A DNA stretch of 64,000 nucleotides from Selaginella moellendorffii (GCF_000143415.4 NW_003314388.1:1-64000); one strand, 5' to 3'; numbered from the stretch's first letter, positions 13,561 to 59,292 are shown. Program-made: numbers and translations. The notes: generated by a model from the letters alone, not told the origin.

Positions 13561-14004
13561 TTTTTTCGGACTAAAATCCATTCAATATCGAGAATCATGT
13601 AAGTAAATCGTTATTGTAAAATTCTAGACTCAGAGACGCTCCGAGTGAGAGAACGAGCTGCTGCTTGCCATTCTTCTCTTCGCAAGCTACCTGGCCTGTG
13701 CTCAAGCATCGGACGACATACGAAACTTGTACAGCTTGTCTAACGCATGTGCTTTGCTAATTGCTTACAAAAACAATTACCTTTACAAAGCAAAAGCAAA
13801 AGAAAGAGAAATAGATTTGGCATGATTGATGCCACTTTGTACGACGTGCACCGTAGGTCAGAGTTGGCATCTGATTTCATGTTTAAAGCCAAGCAACATC
13901 CCAAGCCACTGACTCATCTTTGCTAGCCACTTCCAAGTTGTCATTTGGATGTTGATTCATCGACGACATTTGTTGTAATTTCTGAGGGTATTCCATTGGA
14001 AGTT

Positions 14005-23175: not shown

Positions 23176-24513
23176 ATGAAGTGCTTGGCGCTCTTCAAAC
23201 ATCTCAAGTCTGGCTCCAAGGCGAAGGAACCACTGGACAAGTTCTCATCATCTAGCACGAGCGGTAGTAGCTGCAACAGCGGCAGCAAATTATCGTCGCG
23301 ATCAAGCAGCCGAGACGATCGCAGCTCGGCCTCCTCGTCTTCCTCCTCGTCTTCCAGGTGCGATCGCAGAGCTAATTTGGAGTGTGTAACAAGCTTTCCC
23401 GGCGATCAAGCCGTGGCTATGGCACTCGCCTCCACCGAAGGGGAGCACTGTTTCCTTTACGTGTCATCAAACACTTCCAGCTCCCGGCGGATCGACGTGC
23501 TCGACTGTAGCAGCAGGGAATTGTCCACAGTTGGCAGCCTTGCTCCCAAAACCCCACCGGTGAGAGCAATCCTCGCGAGCGGCGCCAGAGTTTTCACCGC
23601 CCATCGCGATATGAAGATCAGAGTGTGGACGAGAAGGATCGCCGAGAGCCAGGACGAGCTCATGGTCGTCAAGCACGAGCTCTCCGCAACGCTACCAAGC
23701 CTCCAGGATAGAATGTGTTTCCGATCGCTTTCCATGAGTCGCGACCGCGACCACCACCACCACCACCACCATAGCCATCGCCTTCCAAGACGAAGACGAC
23801 GATCAGACGCCTCGGACTCCACCAAGCTCGTCCAGCACAGGGACGCCATCTCGGGGCTAGCAATCAGTCCTTCTGGGAAGATCCTCTACTCGGGATCCTG
23901 GGACAAGACCATCAAGGTGTGGAGGATCGCCGCATCCTCCAGCTCCTCCTCCATCGCCATCAAGTGCGTGGAATCCTTCACGGCTCACGACGACGCAGTG
24001 AATGCGCTCGCGGTGGCTTCTTGTGATGGCGATGGATTGACGACACTCTACTCGGCCTCCGCCAGCGGCGAGATCAGAGCCTGGGAGTCATCAGATCACC
24101 GCAAGATCAAGCACCGCCTCGCCGCCAGCTTCCACGATCACTCTTCGGCCGTCAACGCATTGCTGCTCAGCCGCGATTCTACTCTCCTCTACTCGGGATC
24201 GGGCGACAAGACCGTGAGAGTGTGGGCGCGATCGAACGAGAATCTCCACGATCTGAGGGTGGTGGAGATCCTGAGAGGGCACAGGCGAGCGGTGCTGTGC
24301 CTGGCGGCGACCATCGACGGCGAGCTCCTGTGCAGCGGCTCCGCGGACAAGAGCGTGAGGATCTGGCGGGGCCATTGCTGCGTGGCCGCGCTGGATTTGC
24401 ACTGTGCGCCCGTGAAATCGCTCGCCATGGCCCGCGATCTCGAGAGCTCCTCCTACACTGTCTATAGTAGCGCCCTAGACGGGAATTTTAAAATCTATAC
24501 CGCTTTGCCCTAA
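23176..24513 (+). CDS. Intronless WD40-repeat protein, JINGUBANG-like
   Basis: WD motifs LYSGSWDKTIKVW, LYSGSGDKTVRVW, LCSGSADKSVRIW and FTAHRDMKIRVW. Likely start MKCLALF at 23176; an upstream ATG at 23041 is possible. Confidence 0.85.
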   Translation: MKCLALFKHLKSGSKAKEPLDKFSSSSTSGSSCNSGSKLSSRSSSRDDRSSASSSSSSSSRCDRRANLECVTSFPGDQAVAMALASTEGEHCFLYVSSNTSSSRRIDVLDCSSRELSTVGSLAPKTPPVRAILASGARVFTAHRDMKIRVWTRRIAESQDELMVVKHELSATLPSLQDRMCFRSLSMSRDRDHHHHHHHSHRLPRRRRRSDASDSTKLVQHRDAISGLAISPSGKILYSGSWDKTIKVWRIAASSSSSSIAIKCVESFTAHDDAVNALAVASCDGDGLTTLYSASASGEIRAWESSDHRKIKHRLAASFHDHSSAVNALLLSRDSTLLYSGSGDKTVRVWARSNENLHDLRVVEILRGHRRAVLCLAATIDGELLCSGSADKSVRIWRGHCCVAALDLHCAPVKSLAMARDLESSSYTVYSSALDGNFKIYTALP

Positions 24514-25257: not shown

Positions 25258-26712
25258 TCACCGATAGTCTAGAACAGAGCAAGGGCTCTCGCCAAAGATC
25301 TTGGGCTTGCTCCTCAGCGACACCCACCACGCCTTGAGAAATCCATCCAGCCCGCCGCTGTAGACCATGCATCCGTCCACAATCCCCTCGATCGAGACGA
25401 TGACGCTCTTGATCGGGCAGCGGCTGTGCAAATCCTGGACCACGCACACGCAGGAATGCCGCTCGTCCTCGCGCCTCCACACCCGGATTGTCCGATCCGC
25501 CGATCCGCTGCACACGACGTCGCGCGCCGCCGAGATCGACAGCACTGACATGGAATGCCCGCACAGCGCCGCGAATTCCTCGCGATAAACCCTAATCTCT
25601 GGCTCTTCGCGAAGAACCCTAATTCCCTGGTTTTCCTCTTCCCCGGACTCCGACGATGATGGGTCCTCTGCTCCTCGCGGAGGCGATGCTTCGTCCTCCT
25701 GCTCGATCGCCACCATCCACACCGAGATCCTCCCATCGCTGCACCCCGCGTAGACCCAGCTCCCCCACAGCGCGATGCAATTCACGGGGCTGGGCTGCGC
25801 GAGCTCCACCACGAAGCTCAGCCCATCGCTCGATCCCTTCGTGTTCTTGTGGTTCTTCCTCGATCGATCGCACTTCCCCCACCTCCACACCTTGACTGAC
25901 GAGTCCGCCGAGGCCGAGAACAGGAACCCGCCTCGCGGCGCCACCGCCAGCGCGTTGATCGCGTCCGTGTGAGCGTCCCCGATGGATTCCAGGCAGCGCA
26001 GGTCGCGCAGCCGCCACGCCTTGAGCGATCGGTCCCAGGAGCCCGAGTAGAGGATCCCGGCGGCCTCGTCCACGGCCAGCGACGAGATGGTGTCGAAGTG
26101 CTGGTTCCAGGGGCTCTTGCGGTGGCGCCGGATCCTCACCAGGCCCTTGCTGCCGCGGATGGAGGTCGCCACCACGTCCCGGATGGTGGGGAGAGTGGCG
26201 ATCAAGCGGTGCTGCGATGGTGGCGATGGCGATGCCCGGCTCCAAGCCCGGATCTTGTGATCCTGGTGGGCGCTGTAGATCTCGAGGCCGGCGCGGCGTA
26301 CGAGGAGGGCCTTGACGGAGCCCGAGGAGGCAGCGGCGAGGCGATCGCTGGGCTGGAGATCGGCGAGGCGATACGAGCAGACGAGGCCATCCTCGGAGCC
26401 CGAGTAGAGCGAGTGGTCGGAGATGGCGAGCGCGCAGATGCCAGACGCGTGGGGCTTGAAGGAGAGGAGGCAGCGGAAGCCCGCGGAGGATCTGGAGGAG
26501 CTGCTGGGGCGGAGTTGATCGATCGCGGTGGCGAGGAGGAACTGCTGCTGCTGCTGCTCCGATTGATCCTTGTCGGAGGTGGTGGTGTCCGAGATGGAGT
26601 CCGAGATGGGGAGATCATCAAATGGGTCACGGAAGGACGAGGAGGCCATTGCGATCGAGGTGGAGCTGGATGGAAAGCACGCGAAGCTCCTCTTCTTCAT
26701 CAATCCGACCAT
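25258..26712 (-). CDS. Intronless WD40-repeat protein, JINGUBANG-like (second paralog)
   Basis: IYSAHQDHKIRAW, LYSGSWDRSLKAW, AHTDAINAL, CSGSADRTIRVW and YSGGLDGFLKAW. Confidence 0.9.
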   Translation of the reverse strand: MVGLMKKRSFACFPSSSTSIAMASSSFRDPFDDLPISDSISDTTTSDKDQSEQQQQQFLLATAIDQLRPSSSSRSSAGFRCLLSFKPHASGICALAISDHSLYSGSEDGLVCSYRLADLQPSDRLAAASSGSVKALLVRRAGLEIYSAHQDHKIRAWSRASPSPPSQHRLIATLPTIRDVVATSIRGSKGLVRIRRHRKSPWNQHFDTISSLAVDEAAGILYSGSWDRSLKAWRLRDLRCLESIGDAHTDAINALAVAPRGGFLFSASADSSVKVWRWGKCDRSRKNHKNTKGSSDGLSFVVELAQPSPVNCIALWGSWVYAGCSDGRISVWMVAIEQEDEASPPRGAEDPSSSESGEEENQGIRVLREEPEIRVYREEFAALCGHSMSVLSISAARDVVCSGSADRTIRVWRREDERHSCVCVVQDLHSRCPIKSVIVSIEGIVDGCMVYSGGLDGFLKAWWVSLRSKPKIFGESPCSVLDYR

Positions 26713-27810
26713 AGCTAGCTAGCTTCCTTTCTTCACACTCAAGTCTTCTCTATTGGCGAAGAAGATGATCGCTTTGTTCCACACCCCACACACAACAAAT
26801 GCGTGATCTTCCAGGACAGAAAAAGAGGGAAAACTCCCTTGAAACGACCCACCGGACGCTGACAATGTAAAGATGTTCTCCAGAACCGATCGACACCCAA
26901 AGCACAGGGAAAACAAGAAGGAATCTCTTCGATCAAACAGATCGTTCCCAAGGAAAGGAAAAGTCCTTCCAAGTACTGCTCCAAACCGAAAACTGGGGGA
27001 AAACAAGAACAGTGAGCATCACCAGCGACGAGAAAACGATTGCAATGCCCGATTGCCGCTCGATTCTCCGTGGCACAGCGCCTTCGATTCCTCGGTTTCT
27101 CTCTCCTGGACGCAACGGATCAAGAGGAAAAGCGAGAGAAACAGGAAAAAGAGGAAGAAAAAGCCCACAGCACTCTTTCTCCGCGGCGAGAGAGCAAAGA
27201 AAAAACAAAGAGAAGGGAATCCAACGTATTGATCACGGTAGCGTTAGCAGCATTCCACCCAGTCCGTGGGCTCCATTCTGCCCCGCCATCGCCAAAAGCC
27301 CTAGAAACAGAGCACCCCACAAACCCTAAAGCATGTTTAGGCGGCAAACGCGCGTGGGGGTTTACGAAATCAACGGGGCTACCGCTGGCCACGTGTCACG
27401 CAGGGTGGGGACCATAAACCGCCACGTGTGAAAGTAACCGTTGGGAGGAGAATATCCGCGCATCTGCTCAGTCAAGTAAAGCGCAATTTAAATAAGCGTT
27501 AAGCTTACGTCTTGGCGCCAAAGTTTGAAATTTTAAGATATTTTAACATTAGTCCAAGATTACATTTACCCGGAATCACTAAAAAGATTCTAAATCTAAC
27601 ACATGGAAATCGTGTTTGTTTGTTTGTCACTTTTTGTGATTTCCAGATCTCTACATTGATACTCAAGGTGGCATGCTTTGTCACTAAATCATCAGGTATC
27701 TCTAGCACTGGAGATGATCTGGTAGTGACATTAACACTAAGATCCAAAAAGAGATCTCTCTTTTGCAAAAATCTTCCGAGGTTATGGGATTTGCAATCTG
27801 TGTTTATTTT

Positions 27811-29072
27811 TTATGATTGATGATGAGTCCCTTCCAGAAGCTTTTGCTCCTCGTCCAGGAGCGTCTGGAGATCGCTACCATTTGCGAGGCTGTTAAACTC
27901 CACCGCGCGAGAGGGGAGCGAAGGATACCGTCGCTGGCAAAGCGTCATGAGCCGCTTGATCGACTGGAGGTACTTCCGCGTCGTCTCGTCGTTCATGATG
28001 TGAGCCACGCTGTTGGCGTAGATCTTCTCGCGCGCCGACCGCTCGTGGATGCCAACCATGGTGACACCGATCGGCCAGGGAGCGTTTCCAATCGCGAGCT
28101 TGATGTACTGGTCCATGGCGGCCAGGTAGTCGCGCCTCCGGCAGCAGTCCACCACGATCACCAAAGCCTGCCGGATATCATCCGGAAGAAGCTGCAAGGG
28201 AGAGAAACCATGAGAAAATCCATCTCCGGAGACAAACCAACTAGAAAAGCTTGCGAGAGAGAGAGAGAGTATCAAAGCGTCACCTTCTTGGAGCACAGCT
28301 TGAACAGGGGCTTGAGATATCTGGAGCACTGCTTGAAAGTAGCGACGATACGACCACCTCGCTTCTCGGCGTCGGGCCGCGCCTTGATCTCTTGCTCCCA
28401 TTCCTGGATAAGCCTCTTGAAGAAGACCAGGATCTTGTCCTCGTCGCACAGCTCCTCGAAGTTGGCCTTCATGAGGAGATCCTTGTCCTTGTCTCCGCCG
28501 CTCTCGCCATCCAGCGCTTCTCCCCCGGCGTTATCGTCTCCGCGATCGTCGTCCTCCTTCTCCTTGTTCTTCTCCTTCCTGGGCTCCAATCCGTGCTTCT
28601 CCCTCTTCTTGAGCTCCGCCAGATCCATGAGGAAATCGTTCCTCTGGCCCTCCATGAGCTCGCTGTCCGTGTCGGTCACCCCCGCCCGGAGCGCCACCTT
28701 GAGCCTCTCCAGCCGCATTTCATCGTCCTCGCCAAACAGCGTGATGGGCTGCTTGAGGAGGCGGAGGCGGCGGATCACCTCCGCGTTTGGGAGGACGAGA
28801 TCGTCCAGCTTCTCCTCCTCGCTGAGATTTACCCGGGATTTCGACGACGTCGCCGACGCCGACGGCCGCTCGCTGCTCTGGTCATCGCTCCTCACCTCGC
28901 CGCCCTTGCTGCTGCCCGCCGCCCTAGCTCTGGCCGCCGCCGCGTCCTCCTCCCTCCGCCGCTTCTCTAGCTCCTTCTTCTCCAACTCCGCGCGCTTCAC
29001 GAACTTGCGGCTCCCGAATTCCTCCTGCATTTGCTTGCGCTTGCGCTCGATCTCCTGCTTGAGCGCGTCCAT
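27811..29072 (-). CDS. PRP18: Pre-mRNA splicing factor 18 (exons 29072-28284, 28191-27811)
   Basis: EVIRRLRLLKQPITLFGE (PRP4-like motif) and YIKLAIGNAPWPIGVTMVGIHERSAREKI...TRKYLQSIKRL. Confidence 0.95.
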
Positions 29073-29165
29073 CCTCCCGTGCGCGAAAGCCCTAACCTGG
29101 GATTTTAGGGCTCTTCGAAACCTAGAATATATACTTGAGGATATTCTTTCATTTTAAATGTGACG

Positions 29166-35965: not shown

Positions 35966-38900
35966 TCAATAATGGTGATCTTCACAGACCCAGCCACATG
36001 GACTTTTGACGAGTCCAAAGCACTTCTTCATCATCAAGATTCGGTCCTCGCCATATCGTTGAGGTGAATTCTTTTTCACATACTCAAACAACTCCATAAT
36101 GTCATCTTTTGATGCTGGTTGCAACCTGTTATTGAGATCGCCTTCAAAGCAGGAGTCAATTGTAGCCTTCAAGCCATTTGCACCAAGCTCAATCAAGGTA
36201 CCGACCAGCTCCCCTCCCACTGGCGATGCCACTTTACCGAGCTTTGCAAGGGTGAAACACATTGTGATGCCTGGGACGAAGACGTTGCTATACTTTTTGA
36301 ACCATTGATTTGGGATAGTGATTGGTACTCCTGGGTACTTCTTCAAATCAACTGGGTGACAGCCGCTTGTATGCTCACATAAGTAGCTAATATTTGCCCG
36401 TTTCCCAATCAGTGGTGAATATTTTAGCAACAGATTTGACTCCATTGTAAGGTGCGGGAGTTTCGGACACTCCAGCTTAATGGATTCCAACAGTGATGAG
36501 CAGCTCTTGATCAATGCGTTTTCTGTGTCCTTCAGGCCCTTTTGCAGCTTTTGTAAAGATTCTTTGATATCTGTTATGGAGACCTTAAAGTCCTCCATAT
36601 ATATCTGAATCCCCTGCATAGATTTCTGTTGATGCTTGTGTAATTGGTAGCAAAAGTTAGCAAGGTTGCTCATGTCATCACTTTCAAACTTTGGGATCTC
36701 GACCTGCACAAGCTGTAGCTGCTGGTTTTGGTACACTGACACTATGTGCTGGTTGTATTCTTTGACAACCTCTTCAACAGCATGCTTACGTGGCTGAATA
36801 ATCTCGTTGACTTCACTTGGCATCAAGAGTTCCAAGGCACTTGTGGAGTCACCAAAACCCCAGGTAAAGTGATAATCAAAGCCCTCCCTGGCTACCATCT
36901 GTTTGACCTCTTGCAGTGTCCAAGAGCTCTTGCTGCATGATCCCTCTTGTCCTGATGCTTTTCCAAACTGTCTTACCTTCCCTGGATTCAAAACATGTTC
37001 TTCAAGCTTGATGAAAGGACAGGCCCTATTAGTTTCCTTTACTACACAATCTCGTATCTCCTTCATGAACTGCTCCCCTTTGAGTCCCCTCTCTTCCTGC
37101 TTGGGCACCATCAACATAATATCCACCCATTGCCTATCTGTCCAATGCTTATAATCCCCACCAACAGTAACCAGAACTTGAATGCGATCCTCTTCAAATG
37201 AAACCCAACCTGCACCAAGCTCACTTCCATGGCCCCATTTGTCACACATCTCCTTCACCTTAGCTTGAATAACTGCAAATAGTCCTGCTTTCAATCAGTA
37301 TTAGTCTAATCCAACAAGTAATCCAGCATAATTACCTGATGGGAGAAGAACGAAGCCCTTCATAGTGTCGTCTGCTTGCAATCTCCGACCCCAACAATCA
37401 TATGTTTGCTCGCTTTCAATCCATCCACTGAACTCATCACACAATAATGCAGGCACAATGAGGTGTTCTGGCCGATTTCGTGGCTCTGACCACCTTATCT
37501 CCCAGCTAGTCATGCCATCAGGAATCAAAACCCCCATCTCACAGAGCAGCTTGAGCAGGAAATAGATGTTGCCCTCCGCAGTCTCTCCAAGTGTTTTGAG
37601 CTCTTGTACTGCTTTCACAGTAGACCACTTGGGTTCCCCCCACTTCATCGTATCGTTTCTGTCTTGCTTAGGAATGAAAATTCCTAACACAGTGTGGAGA
37701 AACCATGGCATGTCTAGAACTGCATTGTTGACAATCAATGCAGCTTCTTTGTCGTTTGGATCCCTGTCTTGATATGTGTCATCTGCCCCAAAGTAGACAG
37801 CTTCTCCCATGTCATGTAAGCAGATGAATGTGTATTGTGCAGCAAATGCCTGATCTTCTTTCTCCTCCTTGAACCAAGCCTTGGACATCTCATGTAGGTC
37901 TACCACCCTCTGTTGGACAAGTGTTTGTGCCCGTGTGTGGATATGATACCATGGTGTGGATGAACCCCGCCTTCTGATAACCTCATCACAAGTCCAGGGA
38001 ATCACAGGAAGTTTATTTATCATTTCGTCCACTGCTATCGCGAGCTTGGGCTTCAGTTCCTTCTGTACCTGACGAGCATTCAACCCATTCACCTCGAAAT
38101 AGTGATCACCACGTTGGCCCTGAACAAAGTCTAGCTTGTCCTTATACTTGAGTAACAGTGTCGTCGCAGCTGCTCGAGCTTCTACCAAGAAACGGTTATC
38201 ACGAACAAAGATGTTGAGTACTAAGAAAATGGTGGGTTTCCTAGCTGGTGTTGCAGATTGGTGGGCCGCTATGAAGCGAAACCAGTATTGGAGCTCTGTT
38301 TCCAAGTCACCTCCAGGACCTCCAACCTTGCACACCACCATGAAGAGATCTTTGTCGCTGCCCCTGAGGAAATAGTGATGAAAAGCGTGGTAGACCTCCT
38401 GGCCTCCCAGATCGTAGATCAGGAGTTTCTTCCTCTCTCCAAATCTGAGAGTCCTCCTCTCAATTCCCACTGTTGATGATGCATGATCCTGACGCGGCGG
38501 CTTGACGCACTGCCGGAGGGCTGCACAGGTGCGGACAAGATTGGTGGAGATGGTGGTCTTGCCCGAGGCAGTGTGGCCGCACATGAACAGCTTGGCAGTT
38601 GATGGTGTGACTGGAGTGCTTTTTGCAAAAACGGGGCTCTTCTGAAATAGAGCATTCCGGTACTTTACCCTCAACCACCTGCCCTCCTGCACTTTAGAAG
38701 CCCATTTGCCTCCAATTTGCAGTCTCTGGATCCGGCTGCTGTAGTTAGCCTCCAAGCTGCTGAGAACCACACCTTGAAGTCTTGAATTTCTTATAAATTC
38801 ACTCCTGAGAAAAATAAGTTGAGGACTTTCCCATAACGGAGACAAGGAGACACTTTCAAGCTTGCAATATGGGCTCGCCAGTAACTGACCCACGGGCTTC

Positions 38901-39664
38901 ATTAAAGTTACTGGATCGATTGATTCTAACTCCAGGAACCAGAGCTTGCACTTGGCATTGTTGTTTATGCATTCTGCCAGCAGGGAGATCTCCTCATGGC
39001 TGGCCACATTTGAAATTCCAAGGCCTTCTATTGATCCGCAGATTTGGCTGAGTAGCGCCTGATCATTTGGGGTGTTGACCAGCCTAAGCTTCCGTAGACT
39101 TGTTCGAGCCTGAAAGAGGGCAGGGGTCAAGTATTCATTCTGATCCAGGGACAGCTCCCAGATCTTGCAGGCTGGATCTTGCAGCAGCTTCTCCAGGTGG
39201 GGCGAGCAATCGCATTGTTTAAGCTCCAGACGTTCTAAATACTTTGGAAGTGTTGATTCTGCTAAAGCATCTAAATCTACAGCACAGGAATATAGAAAAA
39301 GCGTCTTGAGCTTGATTGGCATCCCCTTGTGCTTGGCAGCAGCAATAGCATCATCCAAGCTGCGAATCACCTCCTCACCAAATTTGTGTCTAATTCTAAG
39401 GCTGCTCAGCTTGGACACAGCTGCTTCTAGAAACCCCTCCACTTTGTGGTAGCCCTCCCTCCACACGAATACGTGCTCCAGAGTGTTGTCCTCCAGCAGC
39501 AGCAGGTTGCGCAAGCCTTTGAAGTCTTCTGAATCGAATTTTGCTGCTCTGTATCTCTGTTCCTTCAGCTGACTCACACTCGACACCCAATGGTTCCAAC
39601 TCTCAAAGCGAATGCTTCCCAAATTCTCGTAATCATCTATCCGGGCCTGCTTTGGCTCCCCCAT
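35966..39664 (-). CDS. TORNADO1-like Roco protein (LRR-Roc-COR-coiled coil), copy B, intact, about 1215 aa (exons 39664-37336, 37284-35966)
   Basis: LRR-like repeats (LKTLFLYSC, LERLELKQC, IWELSLDQN, LRKLRLVN), GHTASGKTT, STVGIE, IYDLGGQEVYHAFH, LHDMGEAVYF and ISYLCEH...CHPV. Start assumed at MGEPKQ. Confidence 0.85.
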
Positions 39665-40024
39665 AACTGACAATGGAATACCCTCAGAAATTACAACAAA
39701 TGTCGTTGATGAATCAACATCCAAATGACAACTTGGAAGTGGCTAGCAAAGATGAGTCAGTGGCTTGGCATGCTGCTTGGCTTCAAACATGAAATCAGAT
39801 ACTCTGATCGCAACGCAACCCTACGGTGCACGTCGTACAAAGTGGCATCAATCATGGCAAATATTTTTCTTTTTCTTTTGCTTTCGCTTTGTAAAGGTAA
39901 GCAATTAGCAAGCGCGCTAGACAACGCATAAACTTATGTATGCGTATGCCACTTTACTCACATGCATAAGAGTTGACAATGCAGAAGTAGACAATGCACA
40001 AGTACTCTTCAAGAGATTCCACGT

Positions 40025-48795: not shown

Positions 48796-50750
48796 ATGAT
48801 CTATAGTTATAAATATGTATTTAGTGGATTCTCAGCCAGACTTACCAAAGAACAAGCTGACGAGTTATCCAGTACGTGCTGGAAACTTCAGTCTAATCTA
48901 AACAGTTTTTGTCCTGATCTGTAGGAATGCCGGAAGTTCTCAGTGTTCATCTCTCTTTACACTCTGGGATTTCTTGGGCCTTCCGATCGACGCAGAGTCA
49001 AAAGCAGCAACGCTTTCGTCCGAGCACAAAATTCTGGGTGAGGACTCCAGTGACGTAATTATTGGACTCCTTGACTTGAACTCAATATTCGTCTTTCGAG
49101 GGGTCACACTCCTAATGCACAAGGTATATGGCCTGAATCCGAAAGCTTCCGTGATGATGGAATGAGTCCAGTTCCTGCGACATGGAAGGGCTCCTGCGTC
49201 AATGATCCAAAGACAAACGCTTCCGTTGTAGTTCACTGCAACAGGTACGAGACAGTTCGTCTGCACTCCATCACTTTCTTTTTTCCTGAAATTTGTGAGG
49301 TGCGAAATACTACAGAGCTGGCCTGTCTCCAAACGCTTCGGTGGCATACAGTAATCCTAGAGACTTCGGTGGTCATGGAACGGCCACAGGTTCTATTGCC
49401 GCTGGTATGGCAGTGGCCAACGCGAGTATGGGGGGACTGGCTTCAGGAATTGCAAGAGGTGGTTTTCGCAGTGCCAGGATTTCTGCGTAGAAAGTGTGTT
49501 GGATGTTCCAGTGCTACGACATCAACATTGTAACGGCTTTAGACGACACAATTCACGACGGTGTGGACGTGATCTCGCTCTCACTTGGAGACGTGACTCT
49601 GCCGTATAACATCGACATTATCGCGATTGGTGCCTTCCATGCACTGGAGAAAGACGTTATAGTCTGGAGAAAGACATTATAGTCTCGAGTACTTCTGGAA
49701 ACTCTGGGCCGCTCAACGGAACAGTGACGAATGTAGCTCCTTGGATACTTACTGTTGGTGCTAGCTCAATCGATCGAAACATCACACCGTGAGTCAATAC
49801 TTCAAAGTTGTTTGCTTGACTGATATCTTGTTTTTTCAGGAACTCAACTGTGTTTCCTATAAAGCCCGCACCAGTTGCTGCAGGTTCCTCTTCAAGAGGA
49901 CCCAGCTTTATCAGTCCCGACATTATAAAGGTAATGCTCGTCATGATCAAAGCTGCTTTGCTTTTTTGTTTTCACTGGAAGACACAATTCTGATTTCCTT
50001 GGATGTTTCTCAGCCGGACGTGAGTGCTCGAGGCGCGAGCATTTTGGCGGCATGGAGCGGTGCGCGTCCAGCAATGGATCCAAGTGGGAAGTTTGTGCGC
50101 GTGAACTATGCTATTGCATCTGGAACGTCCTTCGCCTATCCTCACGCAACCGGTACTGCTGCTTTCGTCAAGTCGGTTCATCCAAGATGGAGTCCGGCAG
50201 CAATCAAGTCTGCGATCATGACAACTGGTAGGAGATCATTGTCACGATGAGCAAAAGCGGGGACTGATGCTATCTCTCGAAACTTTTTAGCGAGATTTTC
50301 TCGACAACACCGACAGCGACGGAATGCCAGCAAGCTTCTTCAGCATTGGCGCCGGAGTGATCCAGCCGATGAAAGCCATCGATCCGGGACTGGTCTAGGA
50401 GACCGCTACCTCGGACTACATCCTCTACATGTGCAGCACGGGCCGCAAGAGCACTCCCGCCAGCCTCAACTATCCCTCCATCGGATTCTACATCAGCGTC
50501 GTTAGGAGCGCCATGATCCAGCGAACATCGGCGACGCGAGCTCGATCTACAGATCCCGAGTCGAGGCTCCTAGCGATTCGCGGCTCGCCATCCCCGTCTT
50601 TCCCCAGGAGCTACACTCCTCGAGCAAAGGGGAGAAGCTCTCCTTCAACGTGACGATTGCCATGAGTTCTTCACAAGCGCCCATTTCTTTTCCATGGGCG
50701 TTTTCGTCGCTCACTTGGGACGATGGGAAGCACAGCGTTCGGTGGCCATA
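48796..50750 (+). pseudogene. Subtilisin-like (S8) protease pseudogene
   Basis: I9 prodomain IYSYKYVFSGFSARLT, WDFLGL, IIGLLD, GHGT and SGTSFAYPH (consensus SGTSMACPH). Frameshifts, an in-frame TAG after DPGLV, and an apparently missing PA domain. Confidence 0.85.
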
Positions 50751-51108
50751 AGTTAGTTTGCCGTGTCAGCCGCCACGTCCCTCCTGATATGTAGGGCACG
50801 CGAGTTCCACGTGGCGGTACATTCGAGATTTTAGGGCTTTTGGCAATGGAATCGAGAGAGAGCGATCGATCATGAGCGCTGTCCTGAATGCGCGTCTTTT
50901 CAGCCGAGGATCTTTGCTTTGGTATGTGGAGGTGGACGAAGTGGTGAGGATTTTGCCTTTCTTGCCTGAGGATAAGATCGAACCACGCTCTTTATATGAA
51001 TCGTGTTCGCATCAATTTAGAGATCTGTGTAACAGGTTCTCAAGAATTTCGGGATCGACTATCCCTGCTTGCTAATGAATGAGCTACTAAGCTGTGCTTC
51101 TTCCAAAC

Positions 51109-51978
51109 TTACAATGGAACTACAATCACAGAAACGTTGTCCGAGCTCCCCCTGTTCAAGGCTCTTCGAACTATCCTCGATGCCATTTCGTCCAAGGAAG
51201 TCGATCCGCTACCCATCGTCCTACACACCTCCTCGTTGGACATGGTCTCAAACACTCCGTCCGAGGTGAGCAGCAAGTAGGATCCAGCCCCGGCCTCGGC
51301 GATGCTATACTCCGTGAACTCCGGCGTCGCGATCACGCCATGCGACTTAAACTCCGCGTCACCGATGGCCCGAGACACGGCCAGAGCTCCGTCCACTCGG
51401 TAAACCGCCCCCGTGAAAACAACCCGGCCACCCGCCGCTTCGATCCGTGCTCGCTCCTCGGGCACCTCGGGGTGGTGGTCTCGGCTAAGCTGCACGGCTT
51501 TCAAGCGTGGAGAGCTCGCGGGCGATCCGGCAGCGCAGACGAGAGCTCGAGAGTCGCCGACGTTGGCCACCAGCACGAACTCGGACGTGACAACGGCAAC
51601 ACACGCGGTGGATCCGGCCGTGATCTGGTTACCGAGAACCGCGTCCTCGACGTCGCCCAGTGTGGATCGCAGGGATTTCTCGAATGCATGGCGGCGGAGA
51701 TCGCCACCCTGGGAGGAAAGGTGGCGGACGAACCTGGGATAGAAGAGCGAGGCGGCGAGATCGCTGGCTTGCGCGCCGCCGTGGCCGTCAAACACGCCGA
51801 AGACTCCAAACTGGGTGTGATTGGCCACGGCCAAGATCCTGTCCTCCTGGTAGCGGCGGAGGCCTTGATCGGTGGCGGTGCCGAAGTAGCGGCGCGGCGG
51901 CGATTGCTCGTTGATGGATGATATGAAGCTCGATGTCAAGAACGCGAGCGAGAAGAGGAAGAGCGCTCTCCACACCAT
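51109..51978 (-). CDS. Protein phosphatase 2C with an N-terminal signal/anchor peptide, intronless
   Basis: RRYQED, VFDGHGG, ANVGDSR, LAVSRAIGD, SDGV and SDN motifs; hydrophobic N-terminus MVWRALFLFSLAFLTSSFISS. Confidence 0.93.
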   Translation of the reverse strand: MVWRALFLFSLAFLTSSFISSINEQSPPRRYFGTATDQGLRRYQEDRILAVANHTQFGVFGVFDGHGGAQASDLAASLFYPRFVRHLSSQGGDLRRHAFEKSLRSTLGDVEDAVLGNQITAGSTACVAVVTSEFVLVANVGDSRALVCAAGSPASSPRLKAVQLSRDHHPEVPEERARIEAAGGRVVFTGAVYRVDGALAVSRAIGDAEFKSHGVIATPEFTEYSIAEAGAGSYLLLTSDGVFETMSNEEVCRTMGSGSTSLDEMASRIVRRALNRGSSDNVSVIVVPL

Positions 51979-52384
51979 AGTTTTGTCTTGTCACACATGA
52001 TAAAGGGGACCAATGGCGGCGCGCCACATTATTTATAGTTTTCCTTGTGCTACTGACGTGGCAAGCAGTCACTTTTTAAACGATCCACTCGATATTGGCC
52101 GTCGATGTTTAGGGCAAGGAAGACGAAAATATTTCTGGGAGGGAAGAGCGCCACAAGGTCTTGGAATCGATCCGAGAGGTAGCGGCTATCTTCTCGCTCG
52201 ATTGATTGATTGTAGCTCCATCAGAACGCCCGCACAGTATGGGATGTAGAATTGAGGGGTTTCGTCGATCCCTTATCTAAGAATGCCAGGTACTAAAGTC
52301 TTCGGTTGTTCTCTTTCAGGGTGCGTTTCATTCTTGCTTGCATTTTTTCTGGTATCGCGATTTTTCTCAGGGCTTTGGTGAACC

Positions 52385-55300
52385 ATGGGAAAGCCAGAGA
52401 TCATTTGTCCACCACATATCGATAGTATCTGTCCCATTTGGCTCAAGGTTCCACGAGAGACTCAAGCAGTATTCATCGATGCCACATACAAAATCCAACA
52501 AATAGGTGAACTTGGTCTCCATGGTGGTCCACCAATCTCCTTCCGGCTCCAGGTTTCTTTTTTCATTGTCACTTTCATTTTTTTCCTGTTCTAACGATCG
52601 ATCCACTGGTACATGCAGAAAGAGCACTGGCTCCATCTCGCTCACGAATTTCTACTGGAGAAAGTGAAGCTGAACCATGCCAGCAGCACGTTGTCATGGA
52701 ACCAAAGCAAGCAGCTCGAGAAACTAGAGCAGTGGAACGAGCCGTGGTTCTTTGAGATCCTCGGTGATCCCGTGAAGGACGTTTCGGCCGAGCTGCGAAG
52801 CATAAGGAGACTTCTGGACGATCAACGCCTGGATCCATGTGACGCTTTGAGAGGTTTCATCAACTTGCACCTCAAGACGGAAGCGTACAAAGACTGTCCT
52901 GGAGCTTACTGGGCACTGGACTACACCCAGATGCTCGTTTCGCAACTTCTAGTATCCCAATCACCTTCGCAAGTCTACCACCTTGTTCTCGATTTCGTCA
53001 AGGACTTTTGGACCCCTCCCGAGCTTCTGGACGAGGCCAAGGCCTGGGCCTGCTTTTACGTTGGCGTGGGTACCAGCAAGAGCAGCAACACGGACGATTC
53101 TACGAGCTGGTTTCGGAGGAGCTTGGAACTTGCAAGAAGCTACAATCTCCTTAGCCAGGCCAGTGAGATGCTGGGAGATATTTATCTCGGAGAACGGGAG
53201 CTGATTTCTCATAGCAGGTATTGGGATCTTTCGAAATCTTTGCTGGGTAAATTGTCTTTAGTTTTTTCGTTGCAGGAAACAGGCTCAAATGGTTTATGGA
53301 ATCCAGCACTGGGCTGCTGTGAAGCTCCAGAGAGTGGATGTGGCGCTACACGCACTCTGCAAGCTCTTTCAAGTTGAGTTCTACGCCGGAAACCTTCATG
53401 AGGCCGAGGCACTTGCCAACAAGCTGCAGGGAAACCATGCCGGGGGTTACGTCGCTGCTCAAATCCACGAGATGCATGCATGCATCAACTTCGCTCAGAA
53501 GAGATTTGGCGAGGCCGAGGCGGCCAGCCTCGAAGCTCTCCAGATCCTGGAGCAACTTTCGACAGACATGCTACCCGAGAGCTTCTCATACTTTGAAACG
53601 CAACAGCCGGACACGAGTCATCCCGTTTGCTGGCCGCAAGTCATGGAAAATGTCATGGAGTCAGCTCGACTTGTCTTGGGGATTTCACGGCTATCCAGGG
53701 AGTTTTCAGCTAATCACGAAGGAACCCAGGAAGCAGAAGAGAAGTTGCAAATGCTTGTCTCCATGCAAGGGCTTGTTCCGAAGGCCAATCACAACGCTCT
53801 AGCTGCGGAGCTCGTCCGGAACCGAGCGACAGCCGAGATTTATCACCGAGGCGACCTTGAAGGAGGGGAATCCAGCACTGCTCAACTCTTGGACCTCTGC
53901 AGCAAAAATACCTCTTCCAAGTGCGTACGAATGATCAACATGACGGAGGCTGTGAGCTTTGTGGTGGAGTTGGCAAAGGCAAATGCCCACAGGAACAAGC
54001 TAGACGGCGACAAACTCCAAGAACGCAACTGTGACTCGATCATCGACAGCATTCTTACAGCAAACCAGGATCTAGCAGGGATGTTCACTGTTGGAGATCT
54101 CCTGAAAGCCAGGAGAAGAAAGGCTTTTCGGCCTTTGCAGCGGGAAAAACATCTGCTGTGCTGGTACCAGCAGGAGAGCAGACGTCCGGGGCCTCGTGAT
54201 ATCGATAACGTGGACACCATCTGGGAAGAACTGGAAGCGGTCTACAAGTCGGCGAGAGACGACACTGTGTTTCTCGTCTACCTTTGGGACTGGGTGTATC
54301 CGTTCGTAGAGCTTCCCAGCCAAAGTAAGATGCACAGCTATCTCTTGAATCCAAATGAAGAAGAAGCCCGGTGGCACGCTCAGGCTGTTGGACAGCTCTA
54401 CTCCAAAGTTTACGACATGCGGAGAAACCTTGCCGAGGACGAGGATATTAGGAAGTGCCTGGAGGAGCTTCATCAGCTGCTCATCTCACCCTGGTCGGAG
54501 GAGCTCAAACGAATCCAACCAAAGCGGCTGGTTGTCATCCCAACTTCGGTACGTCTTTCTGAAATTTGCCAGGAAAAGCTTGCAGAGTTTTACGAGCTCA
54601 CAGGTGGTGGCGATGGTGCCGTTTGCTGCATTGCTGGACCCGGAGGACGGACTCTACCTGGTGGAGAAGTATGCAATCTCGTACTCGCCATCCCTGAGAA
54701 TGGTCGAGAGATTCATAGGTAACAAAAGCGACCAGGTGGTCATCAAGCAGGCTATGGTGGTGGGAAATCCAGACGACTCGCTGGAATCGGCAGAAGACGA
54801 GGCCGTGCTCGTGGTCAACAAGCTCATGCAACGAGGATCATGTCAGGTGGATCTCTTATTGGGTCTTCAAGGCAGGCGAGCCCGTGAGATGGACGAAGCT
54901 GCCGCAGCAACTCGTGCAGCAGTGATGGACTCGTTTTCCAGCAGTCGCTGGATCCACATCGCGGGACACTCGTCGATCAACAACAACTTTCCTTGCGGTG
55001 CTCTGCATCTGGAGGACGGGAGCTTGTCAATGGAAGAAATCGAAGAGAAACTTCGCCGTCACAGAGAGGTGGCGAGCTTCGGAGTGGTGCTGAGTGGATG
55101 CAGCACTGCCCTGGGACAGATCGAAATGCAAGGGATAACAGGGCTGTGCCGGTGTTTCCACGACGCTGGGGTTTCGGTGGTGGTGGCTTCTCTCTGGAAC
55201 GTGGACGACTTTGAAACACAGCTGCTTGTGGAAAAATTTTATGCCGAGGCATGCAAGGGTGTGGAGATTGCCGTGGCTTTGCAGTCCGCGATGAAGTCGA

Positions 55301-55401
55301 TGATCCACTCGAAGAACTTCATGGGAGCTCCAGCTTACACTGTCAATCAATGGGCAGCTTTTACAGTCTCTGGAGATCTTTACTCTGCTCTCAGCTTTTG
55401 A
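52385..55401 (+). CDS. TPR-like helical repeat plus CHAT (caspase-clan CD) protease, about 945 aa (exons 52385-52552, 52619-53217, 53276-54548, 54604-55401)
   Basis: All three GT-AG introns splice in frame. CHAT motifs: LHQLLISPW, RLVVIP..VPFAAL, YLVEKYAISYSPSL, WIHIAGH (His 54967), VVLSGCST (Cys 55099), VVASLWNVDD, ALQSAM and WAAF. Confidence 0.88.
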
Positions 55402-55473
55402 AACACAACTGGTACGTATCGACTTTTGGACTGGATCGTCGTCTCACAGACTTTGCTTTTATCATTTGATCAA

Positions 55474-56751
55474 TCAGACTCTCATGAGTTTCATCTCAGC
55501 TTTGTGCACCAGTCTGATCTGAGTCGACTCTCCGCTGAAAGCAACTTCCCCAAGTCCACAGAAGCTCACGACCTTCTCCTTGCGGAGCAGCACCATCCTT
55601 GTCTCAATCGTCACCTCGAAACGCAGATCGTCCAGGATCACGTCCGGGTCCTGAACTTGCCACTGGATTCTCTCCACGCCGGTGATTTGCGGACCAGTGC
55701 CGAGATATGGAAGTTTTGGCCACTCTCCAAACTTGGTCATGGCCTTGTGAGGCTTGTCGCAGTGATAAGGCTTCTTGTTTGCCCAGGTATTCATCTTCCA
55801 CTGGATGCATGCAACGCCAGGGTCTCCCACGTTAACTGGACTAACTGTTGTCAATCTTACTGCAGAGTTGTCGGCCTCCTTCCTAGTGATTCCAATCTCC
55901 AGCTTCGCAGCTGTTGGGATCTTCACGCTCACTCCTGCTCTATACTCGTGCTGCGCGTCAGACGCGATCTGGTAGTCCGGAACCAAAGATAAGCTCTGGT
56001 CGGGGGTGATGAAACAGGGAAGAATCCGGGTGCTCGGCTTCATACTGGTAAGTAAAGGCTGAATCGTGATCTTGACCGAGTCCGGGAAGAAGCCAAACAA
56101 GTGCTCGTGTTTTGTTTCGTCCAGGAAGTCCTCCATGGAGATCCCCACGCAGAAGGTTGACAAGCGCATCAAGATGCTTCTTGGGTGATCATGGTTGGAT
56201 CCAAAGATGTCAACGCAGAGGCCAATCCCCAGCTTTTGCTCCGGCATCCCGGCCGTCGACAGAATGGTCTCTTGGATTTGCTTGCGCTCGTCGACGACAA
56301 AGCTCTTGTATCTCACCGCGTAGTTGATGGCCGGGACTTCGATCTTCGTCCTCTTGGAGTTGTACATGCAGTGGAGCTTCAACTCCAGCCTCTCCTCGTC
56401 GAACGCTCTCGTGCAGTAGATCTTGTTGCGCTCCGCGTGATCGTGATCATGGTCGCCGAGAAGGATGGCTCGTGTCTCCTGGGCAATGGTGTATTGGTAG
56501 TACTCCAGGAGCTCCAAAACAGCTGTGTCCTCGATGAGCTCCTCGGGCAGCAGGATGTCCATGATGCCAGATCTACAATCGACTCGGAGTGCGTCCATGT
56601 CCAAAGGAGTGGAGATCTGGGCTAAGCAGAGGACTTCCGAGAGCTCCTCTTCGTGGTCGTTTGCCGAGACAATCTTGGCATTATATCCATCCCGTGCTAC
56701 AGACTCTAGAAGCTCTGGAGTTACCTGGTCTTTGGAGATGACAAGCACCAT
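55474..56751 (-). CDS. Intronless 425-aa protein with an acidic N-terminal region and a beta-rich C-terminal region reminiscent of leukocidin/hemolysin-type beta-pore-forming proteins
   Basis: Long ORF with coding-like GC content. Pattern GFFPDSVKITIQP...ITPDQ...[HEYRAGVSVKIPTAAKLEIGITRKE]...IQWKM...IQWQV...FEVTIET. The gene itself is likely; the fold assignment is tentative. Confidence 0.65.
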   Translation of the reverse strand: MVLVISKDQVTPELLESVARDGYNAKIVSANDHEEELSEVLCLAQISTPLDMDALRVDCRSGIMDILLPEELIEDTAVLELLEYYQYTIAQETRAILLGDHDHDHAERNKIYCTRAFDEERLELKLHCMYNSKRTKIEVPAINYAVRYKSFVVDERKQIQETILSTAGMPEQKLGIGLCVDIFGSNHDHPRSILMRLSTFCVGISMEDFLDETKHEHLFGFFPDSVKITIQPLLTSMKPSTRILPCFITPDQSLSLVPDYQIASDAQHEYRAGVSVKIPTAAKLEIGITRKEADNSAVRLTTVSPVNVGDPGVACIQWKMNTWANKKPYHCDKPHKAMTKFGEWPKLPYLGTGPQITGVERIQWQVQDPDVILDDLRFEVTIETRMVLLRKEKVVSFCGLGEVAFSGESTQIRLVHKAEMKLMRV

Positions 56752-57291
56752 TCTTCCTCTTTGCAACCGTAACCTAGAGGAAGTTGTTCGCCAATCAAGA
56801 AATTCATCACGGCAGACGCGGAGGGAGTGTCTCGCTCGTTGACTTTCATGAATTGATAAAAAAAAAGGTTACTTCTTTATACGGTGCCACGCATCTCAGA
56901 TACTTCAAAAGTGCTTGTATTCTTGAGTCCCACCCTAGTGTATTTCAACACTGACCAAATAAAATTCCAACAAACCTTTCTCAAGGGAATTGCTGGCGCT
57001 ACACGATTCAAAATACAAGCACATTTTATTTCTCTCTAATTGAAAAAAGGGCAATTGATTAATCTTAATAGCTAGTTGATTGAGAGAATTTGCGTCTTTC
57101 TCTTGGTTAATCGAGTGTCAAAAATAATTAAAATCCAATGAAGAAGAACAAAAAAACAGAGCACGTGAAGCAAGAGCTGGAACTGTAGCGATGCTATACC
57201 CATATGACACGTTGTTCCCCACATTACCAACCAACTGACTCCCACGCGTTGCGAACTCTAGTTAGGGCTGCCCAGCATATACTTTGATCCT

Positions 57292-59292
57292 ATGTGCATG
57301 AACGAGGGCAACAAGCTCCAGGTCTATGATCTATCTGCGTGCACTGATGCCATCGCCGAGCATGCCCGGGCCGGCCACATCCAGCTTGCCAAGAAGGTCT
57401 TCGAGCAAATGCCACACACTGACACAATCTCCACCAACGCGGTGCTATCCGCCTATGCCGCCTTGGGCTATGCCGAGGAAGCCCAGAAACTTTTCGATGA
57501 GATCCCACACAAAGACGTCGCGTCGTGGAACATTATGCTCGGACTTTGTGCCAGGTTGCGAACTCTGGACCAAACCAAGGCTTTCTTCTGCTCGATGGAG
57601 CGCCGGGATCTCGTGTCGTGTAACCAGATGATCTGGGTCTATGCCAAGAGTGGGCATTTTTGCGAAGCTCAGGAGCTCTTTTACGACATGCCACAGCATG
57701 ACATTTTCAGCTGGAATACGATCCTGGCCGCAAGCTCAAGTAACTCGGACATCAAAGAAACACTGGCCATATTCCACGCGATGCCAGTCTTGACGCTTGT
57801 GTCCTGGAATAGCCTCCTTACAGCATTTGCCCAGAGTGGCCAAACTGCGCAAGCCGAGACTGTGCTCCAAACAATGCCAGCTACGAACTTTGTTACGTGG
57901 AATGCAATGCTTACGGCATACGCACAGTGCGGGCTTACAGCCCAAGCGGAGAAAACGTTCGATCGAATGCCCGAGCACAAGCTCATGTCTTGGAACGTGA
58001 TGCTGTCCATGCACGCCCGCGATGGACGCCTGGAGGCCGCCAAGGCGGTGTTTGAGAGCATGGAGTGCCGCGACGTGGTATCATGGACAAGCATGATCAC
58101 CGCGTACGCGCATGGCGGCCACATCTGCGCGGCGCGGGCGGTGTTTGATGCCATGCCTCAGCACAACCTCGTCTCTTGGAACGCGATGCTCGCAGCCTTT
58201 GCTCTCGAACCACGGCGGGCAAGCGGTGCTAAGGCCCTCTTCGATGCCGCCACCCAGCGAAACATCATCTCCTGGAACGCGATGCTTTCCATTTTCCTGA
58301 AAACCGGCGCGTTGCGAGAGGCCCGAGAGCTCTTTCAGCAGATGCCGCGGCACAACCTCGCGTCGTGGAATGCGATCCTGAATGTGTGCCTCGAGGAGGA
58401 AAGCCTGGAGGAAGCGCGGGCGGTGTTTGATCGCATGGAGCAGCGGGATGTGGTGACTTGGTCCGCGATGCTTTCGGCTTATGCGCAATCCGGGTATGTT
58501 TCTGTGATGGAGAAAATGTTTGCGCAAATGCCCCAGCACGACCAAGTCACCTGGAACGCGATGCTCTCGGGCTATGGCGGGAGCGGCAACTTGGAGCTCG
58601 CCTGGGAGATCTTTGAGAAGAAAATGCCGCAGCGGGACGTGGTTTCCTGGACAGCCATGGTGGCCTGTTTTCTCAAAAACAACTACATCCTGGAGGCAAA
58701 GGTGGTCTTTGATCAGATGCCAGTTCGCAACTCCGTGTCGTGGAACGTCTTGCTCTCTGGATATGCCCAGAGTGGGCAAATACTTCTTGCAAGTAAACTC
58801 TTTGAGCAGATGCCCGAGCAAGACTCAGTGTCATGGAGTGCAATGCTTGCGGCTTTGGTCCACAGCAACGATCGCATTCACTCAATTCAATCCAGTCTTG
58901 AGCTGTTCAGCTCCATGATCCTGGTGACAATGCCGGACAAATCGTGCTTCCCGTGCTGCCTCATCGCTTGCAGCCGCACGGGGAAGCTCGCTGCTGCGAG
59001 GAGCTGCTTCGTTTCGATCGTCATGGATTTTGGAGCCAGCCACATCAAACAACACTATTGCTGCATTGTGGATCTGCTGGGGCGTGCGGGATTCCTCGAT
59101 GATGCCCATGATCTCATCCATTCCATGCCGTTCAAGCCTAGTGCTTCGGACTGGAGCTCGTTTCTGAGAGCTTGCCGAATTCAAGACTCTAGAACCGTAG
59201 TCAAGCACTGCTACTTTGCGGCAAAGTCTACAATGGACTCGGCTTGTCACGAGGGGTATGTGTATGTTCTTCTTGGAAACGCATGTATATAG
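57292..59292 (+). CDS. PLS-class pentatricopeptide repeat protein with an E-type C-terminus (putative organellar RNA-editing factor)
   Basis: Many 31-aa repeats (VSWNAMLxAYA...A..F..MP), then HYCCIVDLLGRAG..DA..LI..MPF.P....W..FL.AC and YVLLGN. No DYW domain. Confidence 0.92.
   Translation: MCMNEGNKLQVYDLSACTDAIAEHARAGHIQLAKKVFEQMPHTDTISTNAVLSAYAALGYAEEAQKLFDEIPHKDVASWNIMLGLCARLRTLDQTKAFFCSMERRDLVSCNQMIWVYAKSGHFCEAQELFYDMPQHDIFSWNTILAASSSNSDIKETLAIFHAMPVLTLVSWNSLLTAFAQSGQTAQAETVLQTMPATNFVTWNAMLTAYAQCGLTAQAEKTFDRMPEHKLMSWNVMLSMHARDGRLEAAKAVFESMECRDVVSWTSMITAYAHGGHICAARAVFDAMPQHNLVSWNAMLAAFALEPRRASGAKALFDAATQRNIISWNAMLSIFLKTGALREARELFQQMPRHNLASWNAILNVCLEEESLEEARAVFDRMEQRDVVTWSAMLSAYAQSGYVSVMEKMFAQMPQHDQVTWNAMLSGYGGSGNLELAWEIFEKKMPQRDVVSWTAMVACFLKNNYILEAKVVFDQMPVRNSVSWNVLLSGYAQSGQILLASKLFEQMPEQDSVSWSAMLAALVHSNDRIHSIQSSLELFSSMILVTMPDKSCFPCCLIACSRTGKLAAARSCFVSIVMDFGASHIKQHYCCIVDLLGRAGFLDDAHDLIHSMPFKPSASDWSSFLRACRIQDSRTVVKHCYFAAKSTMDSACHEGYVYVLLGNACI

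Follow-up and report, generated by a model that had tools for sequence, protein, structure and literature searches.

An expressed CHAT protease gene of Selaginella moellendorffii whose spliced 3'UTR runs antisense across a convergent orphan gene

The window, a stretch of 64,000 nucleotides from Selaginella moellendorffii scaffold GL377692.1, includes two convergent genes that the public assembly GCA_000143415.2 annotates at the same coordinates, with products of 945 aa (with a Pfam CHAT domain) and 425 aa. The tail-to-tail arrangement described in the initial annotation was confirmed, with the CHAT stop codon ending at 55401, the stop codon of the second gene at 55474-55476, and 72 bp (55402-55473) between them. 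Gene order is the same on the second haplotype, the adjacency having been seen only on both haplotypes of one genome, and an Rfam scan and a repeat scan of 51900-57300 returned no match. A convergent neighbour in a compact plant genome is by itself no evidence for a functional link. The parts of the CHAT gene, with supporting RNA contigs named by run (X1, X2, X3 and X6), are as follows.

52118-52289, plus strand: first (5'UTR) exon of the CHAT mRNA, its extent limited by contig reach (a 3588-nt X1 contig starts at 52118 and joins 52286/52368)
52290-52370, plus strand: 5'UTR intron, 81 nt, GT..AG (joint in X1, X3 and X6; sequence read)
52385-52552, plus strand: coding exon 1, 56 codons, ATG at 52385 (gene model and RNA contigs)
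52619-53217, plus strand: coding exon 2, helical N-terminal region (intron 52553-52618 skipped in X1, X2 and X6)
53276-54548, plus strand: coding exon 3, first CHAT strands preceded by a helical region whose TPR_16 match stays below threshold (intron 53218-53275 skipped in X1 and X6)
54604-55401, plus strand: coding exon 4, protease core and stop codon 55399-55401 (PF12770 match; intron 54549-54603 skipped in X1 and X6)
54952-54969, plus strand: IHIAGH, with His 798 and His 802 of the 945-aa protein, putative catalytic His (aligns with the 'IHLAxH' block)
55090-55107, plus strand: LSGCST, with Cys 846 (codon 55099-55101) as putative catalytic residue (matches the 'VVLSGCxTALG' block)

The four coding exons total 2838 nt and all introns were confirmed by spliced RNA contigs from multiple studies, as anticipated from the proposed spliceable 945-aa gene; the three coding introns are all skipped when runs X1, X2 and X6 are taken together, and the reading frame is kept in both alleles. 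The product matches Pfam PF12770 (CHAT; E = 2.7e-42, 145.6 bits against a cut-off of 24), with profile positions 34-289 falling in exon 4 and the first 33 positions formed by the end of exon 3. In a 13-sequence alignment, the IHIAGH and LSGCST motifs, previously claimed to hold an intact His and Cys, fall on the His and Cys columns conserved across 12 CHAT proteins, and the L, S and adjacent columns of the 'VVLSGCxTALG' block are invariant. Which of residues 798 and 802 is the catalytic His we presume from general knowledge of the caspase clan.

Upstream of the protease core, the region previously called TPR-like stands as a helical N-terminal region, but its TPR match is weak (TPR_16, E = 0.047, 14.6 bits where the cut-off is 32.7); Pfam returned no match to exon 2, and a search of proteins of 262-835 aa yielded no homolog of the middle region. 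Among short proteins, the closest relatives of the plant CHAT core come from bacteria (30-40% identity), and in their contexts, also bacterial (cyanobacteria-like), no pore-former neighbours were noted. Comparison with the solved CHAT chain 8rot_B by phmmer reached only E = 0.44, and the PADLOC defence models matched neither the CHAT protein nor its 425-aa neighbour. Literature searches on CHAT proteases or leukocidin-like proteins in plants returned nothing relevant, the plant CHAT class being hardly mentioned in the searchable plant literature. The protein consists of a helical, weakly TPR-like N-region of ~680 residues followed by a CHAT caspase-clan protease core. Other CHAT proteins suggest, by analogy, that the N-region most likely keeps the protease off until a trigger binds.

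The CHAT mRNA extends ~1.4 kb beyond its stop codon (~1.2 kb when spliced), antisense to the whole of the neighbouring gene, and contains three canonical plus-strand introns in this extension, a read-through newly found in the present analysis.

55412-55477, plus strand: CHAT 3'UTR intron, 66 nt, GTACGT..CAG, beginning 10 nt past the stop (joint in the 3588-nt X1 contig that holds all CHAT exons)
55787-55865, plus strand: intron within the orphan ORF, antisense, 79 nt, GT..AG (joint in X6)
56048-56124, plus strand: intron within the orphan ORF, antisense, 77 nt, GTAAGT..pyrimidine tract..CAG (joint in X1, X3 and X6, three studies)
55474-56751, minus strand: orphan gene, intronless CDS of 425 codons plus stop, SELMODRAFT hypothetical protein, allele EFJ34455.1 (annotation, codon usage, RNA contigs)

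The acceptor of the first of these introns overlaps the orphan stop codon. As the contigs carry no strand, the strand of the read-through is taken from the splice-site letters alone; a reading of the joints as minus-strand introns was rejected, with no CT..AC reading fitting them, as was an origin from repeats, the repeat scan showing no direct repeat able to mimic the joint at 56048-56124. A protein encoded by the spliced plus strand was likewise rejected for want of a long ORF. Unspliced contigs also cross the region (X2 at 55165-56721, X3 at 56019-56153), which would be expected of a separate minus-strand mRNA, deduced here only from these unspliced contigs and the coding signature of the orphan. 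Since the CHAT mRNA runs antisense across the orphan, the two transcripts can pair or interfere, and a regulatory effect of the overlap is tentatively suggested. The locus is a clear example of a convergent pair in which the spliced 3'UTR of one gene covers the other, protein-coding gene in full.

Canonical plus-strand introns inside the orphan ORF favour a reading in which the 425 codons make no functional protein, the region being instead a long spliced CHAT 3'UTR or a non-coding antisense RNA with a frame that is decaying or was never functional. Very low confidence in every structure prediction of the orphan points the same way, as does the outcome of the homolog searches, in which both a word-index search of 5.8 billion proteins and full HMMER over 1.84 billion representative proteins returned only the 425-aa protein itself. 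These two exhaustive searches uphold the earlier description of an orphan-looking gene; a phmmer search of the PDB gave nothing meaningful, and the sole Pfam match at E <= 10, for the whole protein or any of four parts, was EAL at E = 0.17. The alleles differ by 10 nonsynonymous and 3 synonymous changes, and the resulting pN/pS of 0.94, a further point for a non-functional frame, shows no sign of constraint, though a value of 1.03 for the Pfam-confirmed PP2C neighbour indicates that an allelic test with so few changes has no power.

Against a non-functional frame, codon usage of the orphan in its own frame (+0.246 bits per codon) exceeds that of all 11 Pfam-verified ORFs of the window and the signal is uniform, holding in all four quarters of the ORF, with no coding frame on the spliced plus strand that could account for it. 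GC content by codon position (0.54/0.36/0.69) is similar to that of neighbouring genes. Between haplotypes the 1278 nt of the ORF show 0 indels, and neither haplotype carries a stop in it, whereas the flanking intergenic DNA shows 13 indel events over 1018 nt (13 per kb). A chance ORF was rejected, an open frame of 430 codons being expected ~0.003 times per 212 Mb at local composition. RNA contigs over the gene extend across 55165-56823, with the whole ORF covered by unspliced contigs. The orphan ORF is a real, expressed, species-restricted coding gene, and a frame without a functional product is highly improbable.

The orphan protein divides into two halves of distinct composition.

56050-56751, minus strand: N-terminal half, residues 1-234, acidic, predicted mixed alpha/beta, without family match (charge, profile searches)
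55474-56049, minus strand: C-terminal half, residues 235-425, beta-rich and Trp/Pro/Lys-rich (language-model lead to leukocidin-type pore formers; profile tests negative)
55885-55947, minus strand: alternating hydrophobic/polar stretch, residues 269-289, the 'amphipathic hairpin' of the initial annotation (runs 269-279 and 282-289)

An Asp/Glu-rich N-terminus had been claimed for this protein and was found, with a net charge of -15 over residues 1-100 and -18 over residues 1-234; the same half holds eight of the ten allelic amino-acid changes. Direct reading revealed no signal peptide, the N-terminus (MVLVISKDQVTPELLE) being acidic and having neither a basic n-region nor a long hydrophobic core. 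The product is predicted to be a cytosolic 425-aa protein, acidic and alpha/beta in its N-half and beta-rich in its C-half. The alternating stretch in the C-half exists as described, but is not unusual, being equalled by 196 of 2000 shuffles (~10%).

Whether the C-half has a pore-former fold was approached from several sides, with diverging outcomes. In the ESM Atlas, the nearest clusters to residues 235-425 are Leukocidin (0.93, 0.92 and 0.91; 174 shared features; 20 matches of the Leukocidin family), on a score that is uncalibrated for protein parts and that 4-10% of shuffled proteins bring to 0.9. Weaker matches were to ETX/MTX2, monalysin, aerolysin and bacterial gasdermin, such that all matches are pore-forming families, and the Atlas's own model of these residues (pLDDT 0.40) reaches a TM of 0.56 against a leukocidin-like protein; for residues 1-234 the Atlas had no usable match. 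Profile comparisons, on the other hand, remained at chance level: Pfam found no leukocidin (PF07968) match in the protein or its parts at E <= 10, an HMM built from 9 natural leukocidin-family toxins scored the orphan at -2.6 bits (equalled or bettered by 714 of 2000 shuffles), and hhalign against the leukocidin profile gave a probability of 0.2% (53 of 200 shuffles equal or better). AlphaFold2 single-sequence models were unusable, with a pLDDT of 32.7 for the whole protein and 27.9 for residues 225-425. On the one language-model line, the C-half may adopt a pore-former-type beta-sandwich, at somewhat less than even odds.

The initial annotation had proposed that the 425-aa protein is a putative beta-pore-forming pro-protein activated by the neighbouring CHAT protease, in analogy to caspase/gasdermin. 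Spelled out, the protein would be the cytosolic pro-form of a beta-barrel pore former, its acidic N-half holding the C-half inactive until the triggered protease cuts between the halves (around residues 225-260), whereupon the freed C-half would oligomerise in a membrane and kill the cell, as a plant analogue of caspase/gasdermin. Consistent with such a module are the intact CHAT dyad, the two-part layout of the orphan with its acidic N-half, the placement of residues 235-425 nearest Leukocidin and the retention of the pair on both haplotypes. Precedent also favours a link, as TPR-CHAT proteases of fungi and bacteria cleave a pore former encoded alongside (PMC8851545); among eukaryotes, the Podospora anserina TPR-CHAT protein Q2L-6 cleaves the neighbouring gasdermin Q1-6, and 19% of fungal gasdermins adjoin a CHAT gene (PMC8851545). 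Opposed to it are the lack of sequence-profile similarity to leukocidins in all three comparisons, the unusable structure models, language-model scores that shuffled proteins also reach and an unremarkable hairpin. Further, plants have no operons and convergent genes share no promoter, and the orphan has no homolog outside the species that could show a conserved adjacency with CHAT. A complex prediction with two CHAT-core chains and the 425-aa protein (ipSAE 0.00, partner fold uncertain) counts neither for nor against pairing. On balance, a protease-activated pore former is unlikely here, and a fuller scheme, in which a lycophyte leukocidin-like cytosolic pore former is held by its fused acidic domain and freed by CHAT, with the antisense protease mRNA acting as an RNA-level safety catch, appears less likely still; it would parallel the caspase/gasdermin cell-death module with a different pore fold.

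The reading we favour, and consider reasonably probable, is that the locus holds two genuine, expressed plant genes arranged tail-to-tail, with the only coupling visible in the data at the RNA level and any protein-level link between CHAT and orphan hypothetical. On this reading the locus supplies a plant CHAT protease that is expressed and keeps its dyad intact, and a well-supported, taxonomically restricted gene without relatives. Regulated cell death in plants is ascribed to NLR resistosomes, metacaspases and vacuolar enzymes, and to our knowledge no protease-triggered pore formers, such as caspase/gasdermin or the equivalents in bacteria and fungi, have been described there. The pore hypothesis is possible, not established; if true, a lycophyte CHAT-plus-pore pair would carry caspase/gasdermin logic into land plants, on a pore fold new to it, and the hypothesis lends itself to a cheap bench test.

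The Leukocidin / alpha-hemolysin family (PF07968) includes Vibrio cholerae cytolysin, which needs pro-domain removal. Like this family, residues 235-425 of the orphan are beta-rich, and they contain one alternating stretch and loops rich in Trp, Lys and Pro; both the language model and a low-confidence fold place them nearest to it. The orphan, at most a candidate member, differs in having no profile similarity and no signal peptide, and its candidate domain is ~190 aa, compared to ~250-290 aa in the family, in a predicted cytosolic protein with a large N-terminal extension.

The HET-Q2-like/HET-Q1-like clusters of fungi (PMC8851545) share with the spikemoss pair a eukaryotic setting, a CHAT domain at the C-terminus behind a repeat or helical N-terminal region, and an adjoining candidate pore former. 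The proposed logic is in both cases proteolytic activation, which is putative for the spikemoss pair. Unlike the HET-Q1-like gasdermins, the spikemoss partner does not belong to the gasdermins (Pfam and PADLOC gave no match) and is without relatives; the fungal gasdermins have a short C-terminal inhibitory tail, whereas the putative inhibitory part in spikemoss is N-terminal and ~230 aa long. The spikemoss adjacency is known from one genome. With bacterial gasdermin operons that carry caspase-like or CHAT proteases, and with Craspase, in which the TPR-CHAT protein Csx29 cleaves Csx30 (PMC9729208, PMC9935389), the common element is a PF12770 domain with a His/Cys dyad, though the spikemoss CHAT belongs to a plant gene that is spliced, has four introns and lies outside any operon or CRISPR setting. 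In its transcripts, the locus resembles the convergent cis-natural antisense transcript pairs of plants, which are likewise convergent genes with overlapping transcripts, but differs from them in the completeness of the CHAT/orphan overlap and in the three splicing events within the antisense part.

The initial annotation had placed a spliceable gene for a 945-aa CHAT protease of the caspase clan tail-to-tail with an orphan-looking, intronless 425-aa gene, an arrangement that is confirmed and is extended by a spliced RNA running antisense through the second gene. The features are as follows.

52385-52552, 52619-53217, 53276-54548 and 54604-55401, plus strand: coding exons of the CHAT gene (model derived from sequence, 945 aa)
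55474-56751, minus strand: orphan ORF, 425 aa
55412-55477, plus strand: GT..AG joint in RNA contigs (GTACGT..CAG), downstream of the CHAT stop
55787-55865, plus strand: GT..AG joint in RNA contigs
56048-56124, plus strand: GT..AG joint in RNA contigs (GTAAGT..TTTTGTTTCGTCCAG)

The 425-aa protein has a letter-for-letter match in NCBI assembly GCA_000143415.2 (Selaginella moellendorffii), on scaffold GL377692.1, whose coordinates are those of the window. The annotated order there is a gene for a 664-aa PPR protein (E 1e-94 to Pfam PPR), the 425-aa gene, the 945-aa gene (annotated with Pfam CHAT), a PP2C phosphatase, a laccase and a kinase, and it is identical on the second haplotype (GL377569.1). 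Past the PPR gene the haplotype scaffolds stop aligning (window 59293-66000 against scaffold L002; 43% mismatches, 189 indel events), which, judged from the alignment, points to an insertion or some other structural difference between haplotypes. Some 2 kb away from the CHAT gene, the match of a 153-aa ORF (49789-50250, plus strand) to Peptidase_S8 (E 1.7e-10) covers just the C-terminal end of this subtilase domain, at profile positions 201-273 of 288; the other haplotype carries two short annotated genes of 197 aa (Peptidase_S8) and 146 aa (L002 16567-17856), with none annotated on GL377692.1, and the ORF probably either is a fragment of a subtilase gene or belongs to a multi-exon gene with a faulty annotation.

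Contigs from four public runs, representing four studies, were compared with positions 51900-57300, and as the contigs are spliced the runs hold RNA. All three coding introns of the CHAT gene (52553-52618, 53218-53275 and 54549-54603; all GT..AG) and a 5'UTR intron (52290-52370, GT..AG) were skipped exactly. The last exon matches Pfam CHAT (E 2.7e-42), and when the protein is aligned with 12 members of the family the predicted catalytic motifs IHIAGH and LSGCST line up with its conserved His and Cys blocks, so that both residues are intact as had been claimed. The closest CHAT relatives, among proteins of 191-609 aa, share 30-40% identity and are bacterial wherever context is visible. Of the long TPR-like region proposed upstream, the length stands (~680 residues precede the CHAT core), but the repeat assignment is limited to a sub-threshold TPR_16 match, and no relatives of the region were found among proteins of 262-835 aa. 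The second coding intron differs between haplotypes at 7 of 58 positions (12%), compared to ~0.8% in the flanking exons. Within the 5'UTR exon (52147-52166), the contig from run X1 lacks 1+10+6 letters present in the window, which is indel variation among accessions or between haplotypes.

Three further plus-strand joints lie past the CHAT stop; the first shares one 3588-nt contig with all CHAT exons and the third is present in three studies. No reading as minus-strand introns fits, and no repeat accounts for them as artefacts. The CHAT mRNA therefore reads on for ~1.4 kb of genomic sequence (~1.2 kb spliced) to ~56823, antisense to the entire orphan gene, and no long ORF was found on the spliced plus strand. 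Unspliced contigs cross the same introns (run X2, 55165-56721; run X3, 56019-56153); though strandless, they fit a separate unspliced minus-strand mRNA over the orphan gene, which its coding signature supports. In X1, X3 and X6 the depth of junction pieces was similar to that of the CHAT contigs, with the whole region deeper, though contig depth is a poor measure and carries little weight.

The orphan ORF is a real coding sequence, and a non-functional ORF is very improbable. Given the base composition here, a frame that stays open for so long should arise ~0.003 times in a genome. Codon usage was scored by log-odds against 11 ORFs of the window that Pfam verifies; the orphan reaches +0.246 bits per codon in its own frame, above every training ORF (leave-one-out), with the usual negative pattern in the five other frames and all four quarters alike. 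The two haplotype copies differ by 13 substitutions and by no indels over 1278 nt, compared to 13 indel events in 1018 nt of flanking intergenic DNA. Eight of the 10 allelic amino-acid changes of the orphan protein fall in residues 1-234; its pN/pS of 0.94 (10 N, 3 S) comes from a test without power, since the PP2C neighbour gives 1.03 on 8 changes. The orphan label also held, in that searches of Pfam, solved structures and protein databases found no family, solved relative or homolog, the sole match being its own allele (EFJ34455.1, 98% identity).

Long open frames of 246-275 aa also occur on the antisense strand of genuine genes (PP2C, WD40, PPR), so that length is by itself an unreliable sign of coding here; codon usage does tell the coding strand from the antisense strand.

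51094-51921, plus strand: antisense open frame
25969-26718, plus strand: antisense open frame
28272-29072, minus strand: antisense open frame
58081-58821, minus strand: antisense open frame

Elsewhere in the window, two convergent WD40 beta-propeller ORFs of ~485-490 aa occur (23041-24513, plus; 25258-26712, minus), and a 446-aa ORF (27817-29157) has no Pfam match. Two groups of long ORFs (13945-17747 and 35966-39724) contain a Roc (Ras of complex) GTPase domain and are possibly a duplicated ROCO-like gene pair.

14700-16205 and 37301-39724: Roc domain ORFs (E ~4e-8)
16419-17747 and 35966-37294: adjoining 442-aa ORFs without any Pfam match

All support for a pore fold, as initially proposed for the orphan protein, derives from the ESM Atlas, where a score of 0.9 is reached by 4-10% of shuffled proteins and scores are uncalibrated for parts of proteins. 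The best named matches of the whole protein were below 0.9. For residues 235-425 (the C-half), the three top named clusters were all Leukocidin (0.93, 0.92 and 0.91), with 174 of 256 features in common and 20 matches of that family, followed by weaker matches to ETX/MTX2, monalysin, aerolysin and bacterial gasdermin; the low-confidence model of the Atlas itself (pLDDT 0.40) had a TM of 0.56 to a leukocidin-like model. Sequence comparison, on the other side, gave no match to the Pfam Leukocidin model at E<=10. A profile built from natural family members (the phage PVL proteins LukS-PV and LukF-PV, plus NetF, HlyII, Epx and four further annotated leukocidin-family genes of plasmids) scored the C-half at -2.6 bits, which 714 of 2000 shuffles equalled or bettered, and hhalign against the family gave a probability of 0.2%, a value matched by 53 of 200 shuffles. 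Run without an alignment, AlphaFold2 produced no usable model (pLDDT 33 and 28). The alternating stretch behind the proposed amphipathic hairpin is present at residues 269-289, but 10% of shuffles equal it. Secreted leukocidins have a signal peptide, whereas none is apparent by reading of the orphan protein. The C-half may be a pore-type beta-sandwich, at somewhat less than even odds, and is at most a candidate member of the leukocidin family.

Two independent genes with RNA overlap are the probable reading of the locus. That the CHAT protease acts on a neighbouring pore former is unlikely: operons are absent in plants, convergent neighbours are unremarkable in so compact a genome, and conserved adjacency is not demonstrable because the orphan has no homolog. 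The same protease-beside-substrate logic is nonetheless seen in bacterial gasdermin operons and Craspase. Fungal TPR-CHAT/gasdermin pairs are a good precedent for such a link, as 19% of fungal gasdermin genes adjoin a CHAT gene and in Podospora anserina Q1-6 is cleaved by Q2L-6, the TPR-CHAT protein encoded beside it (PMC8851545).
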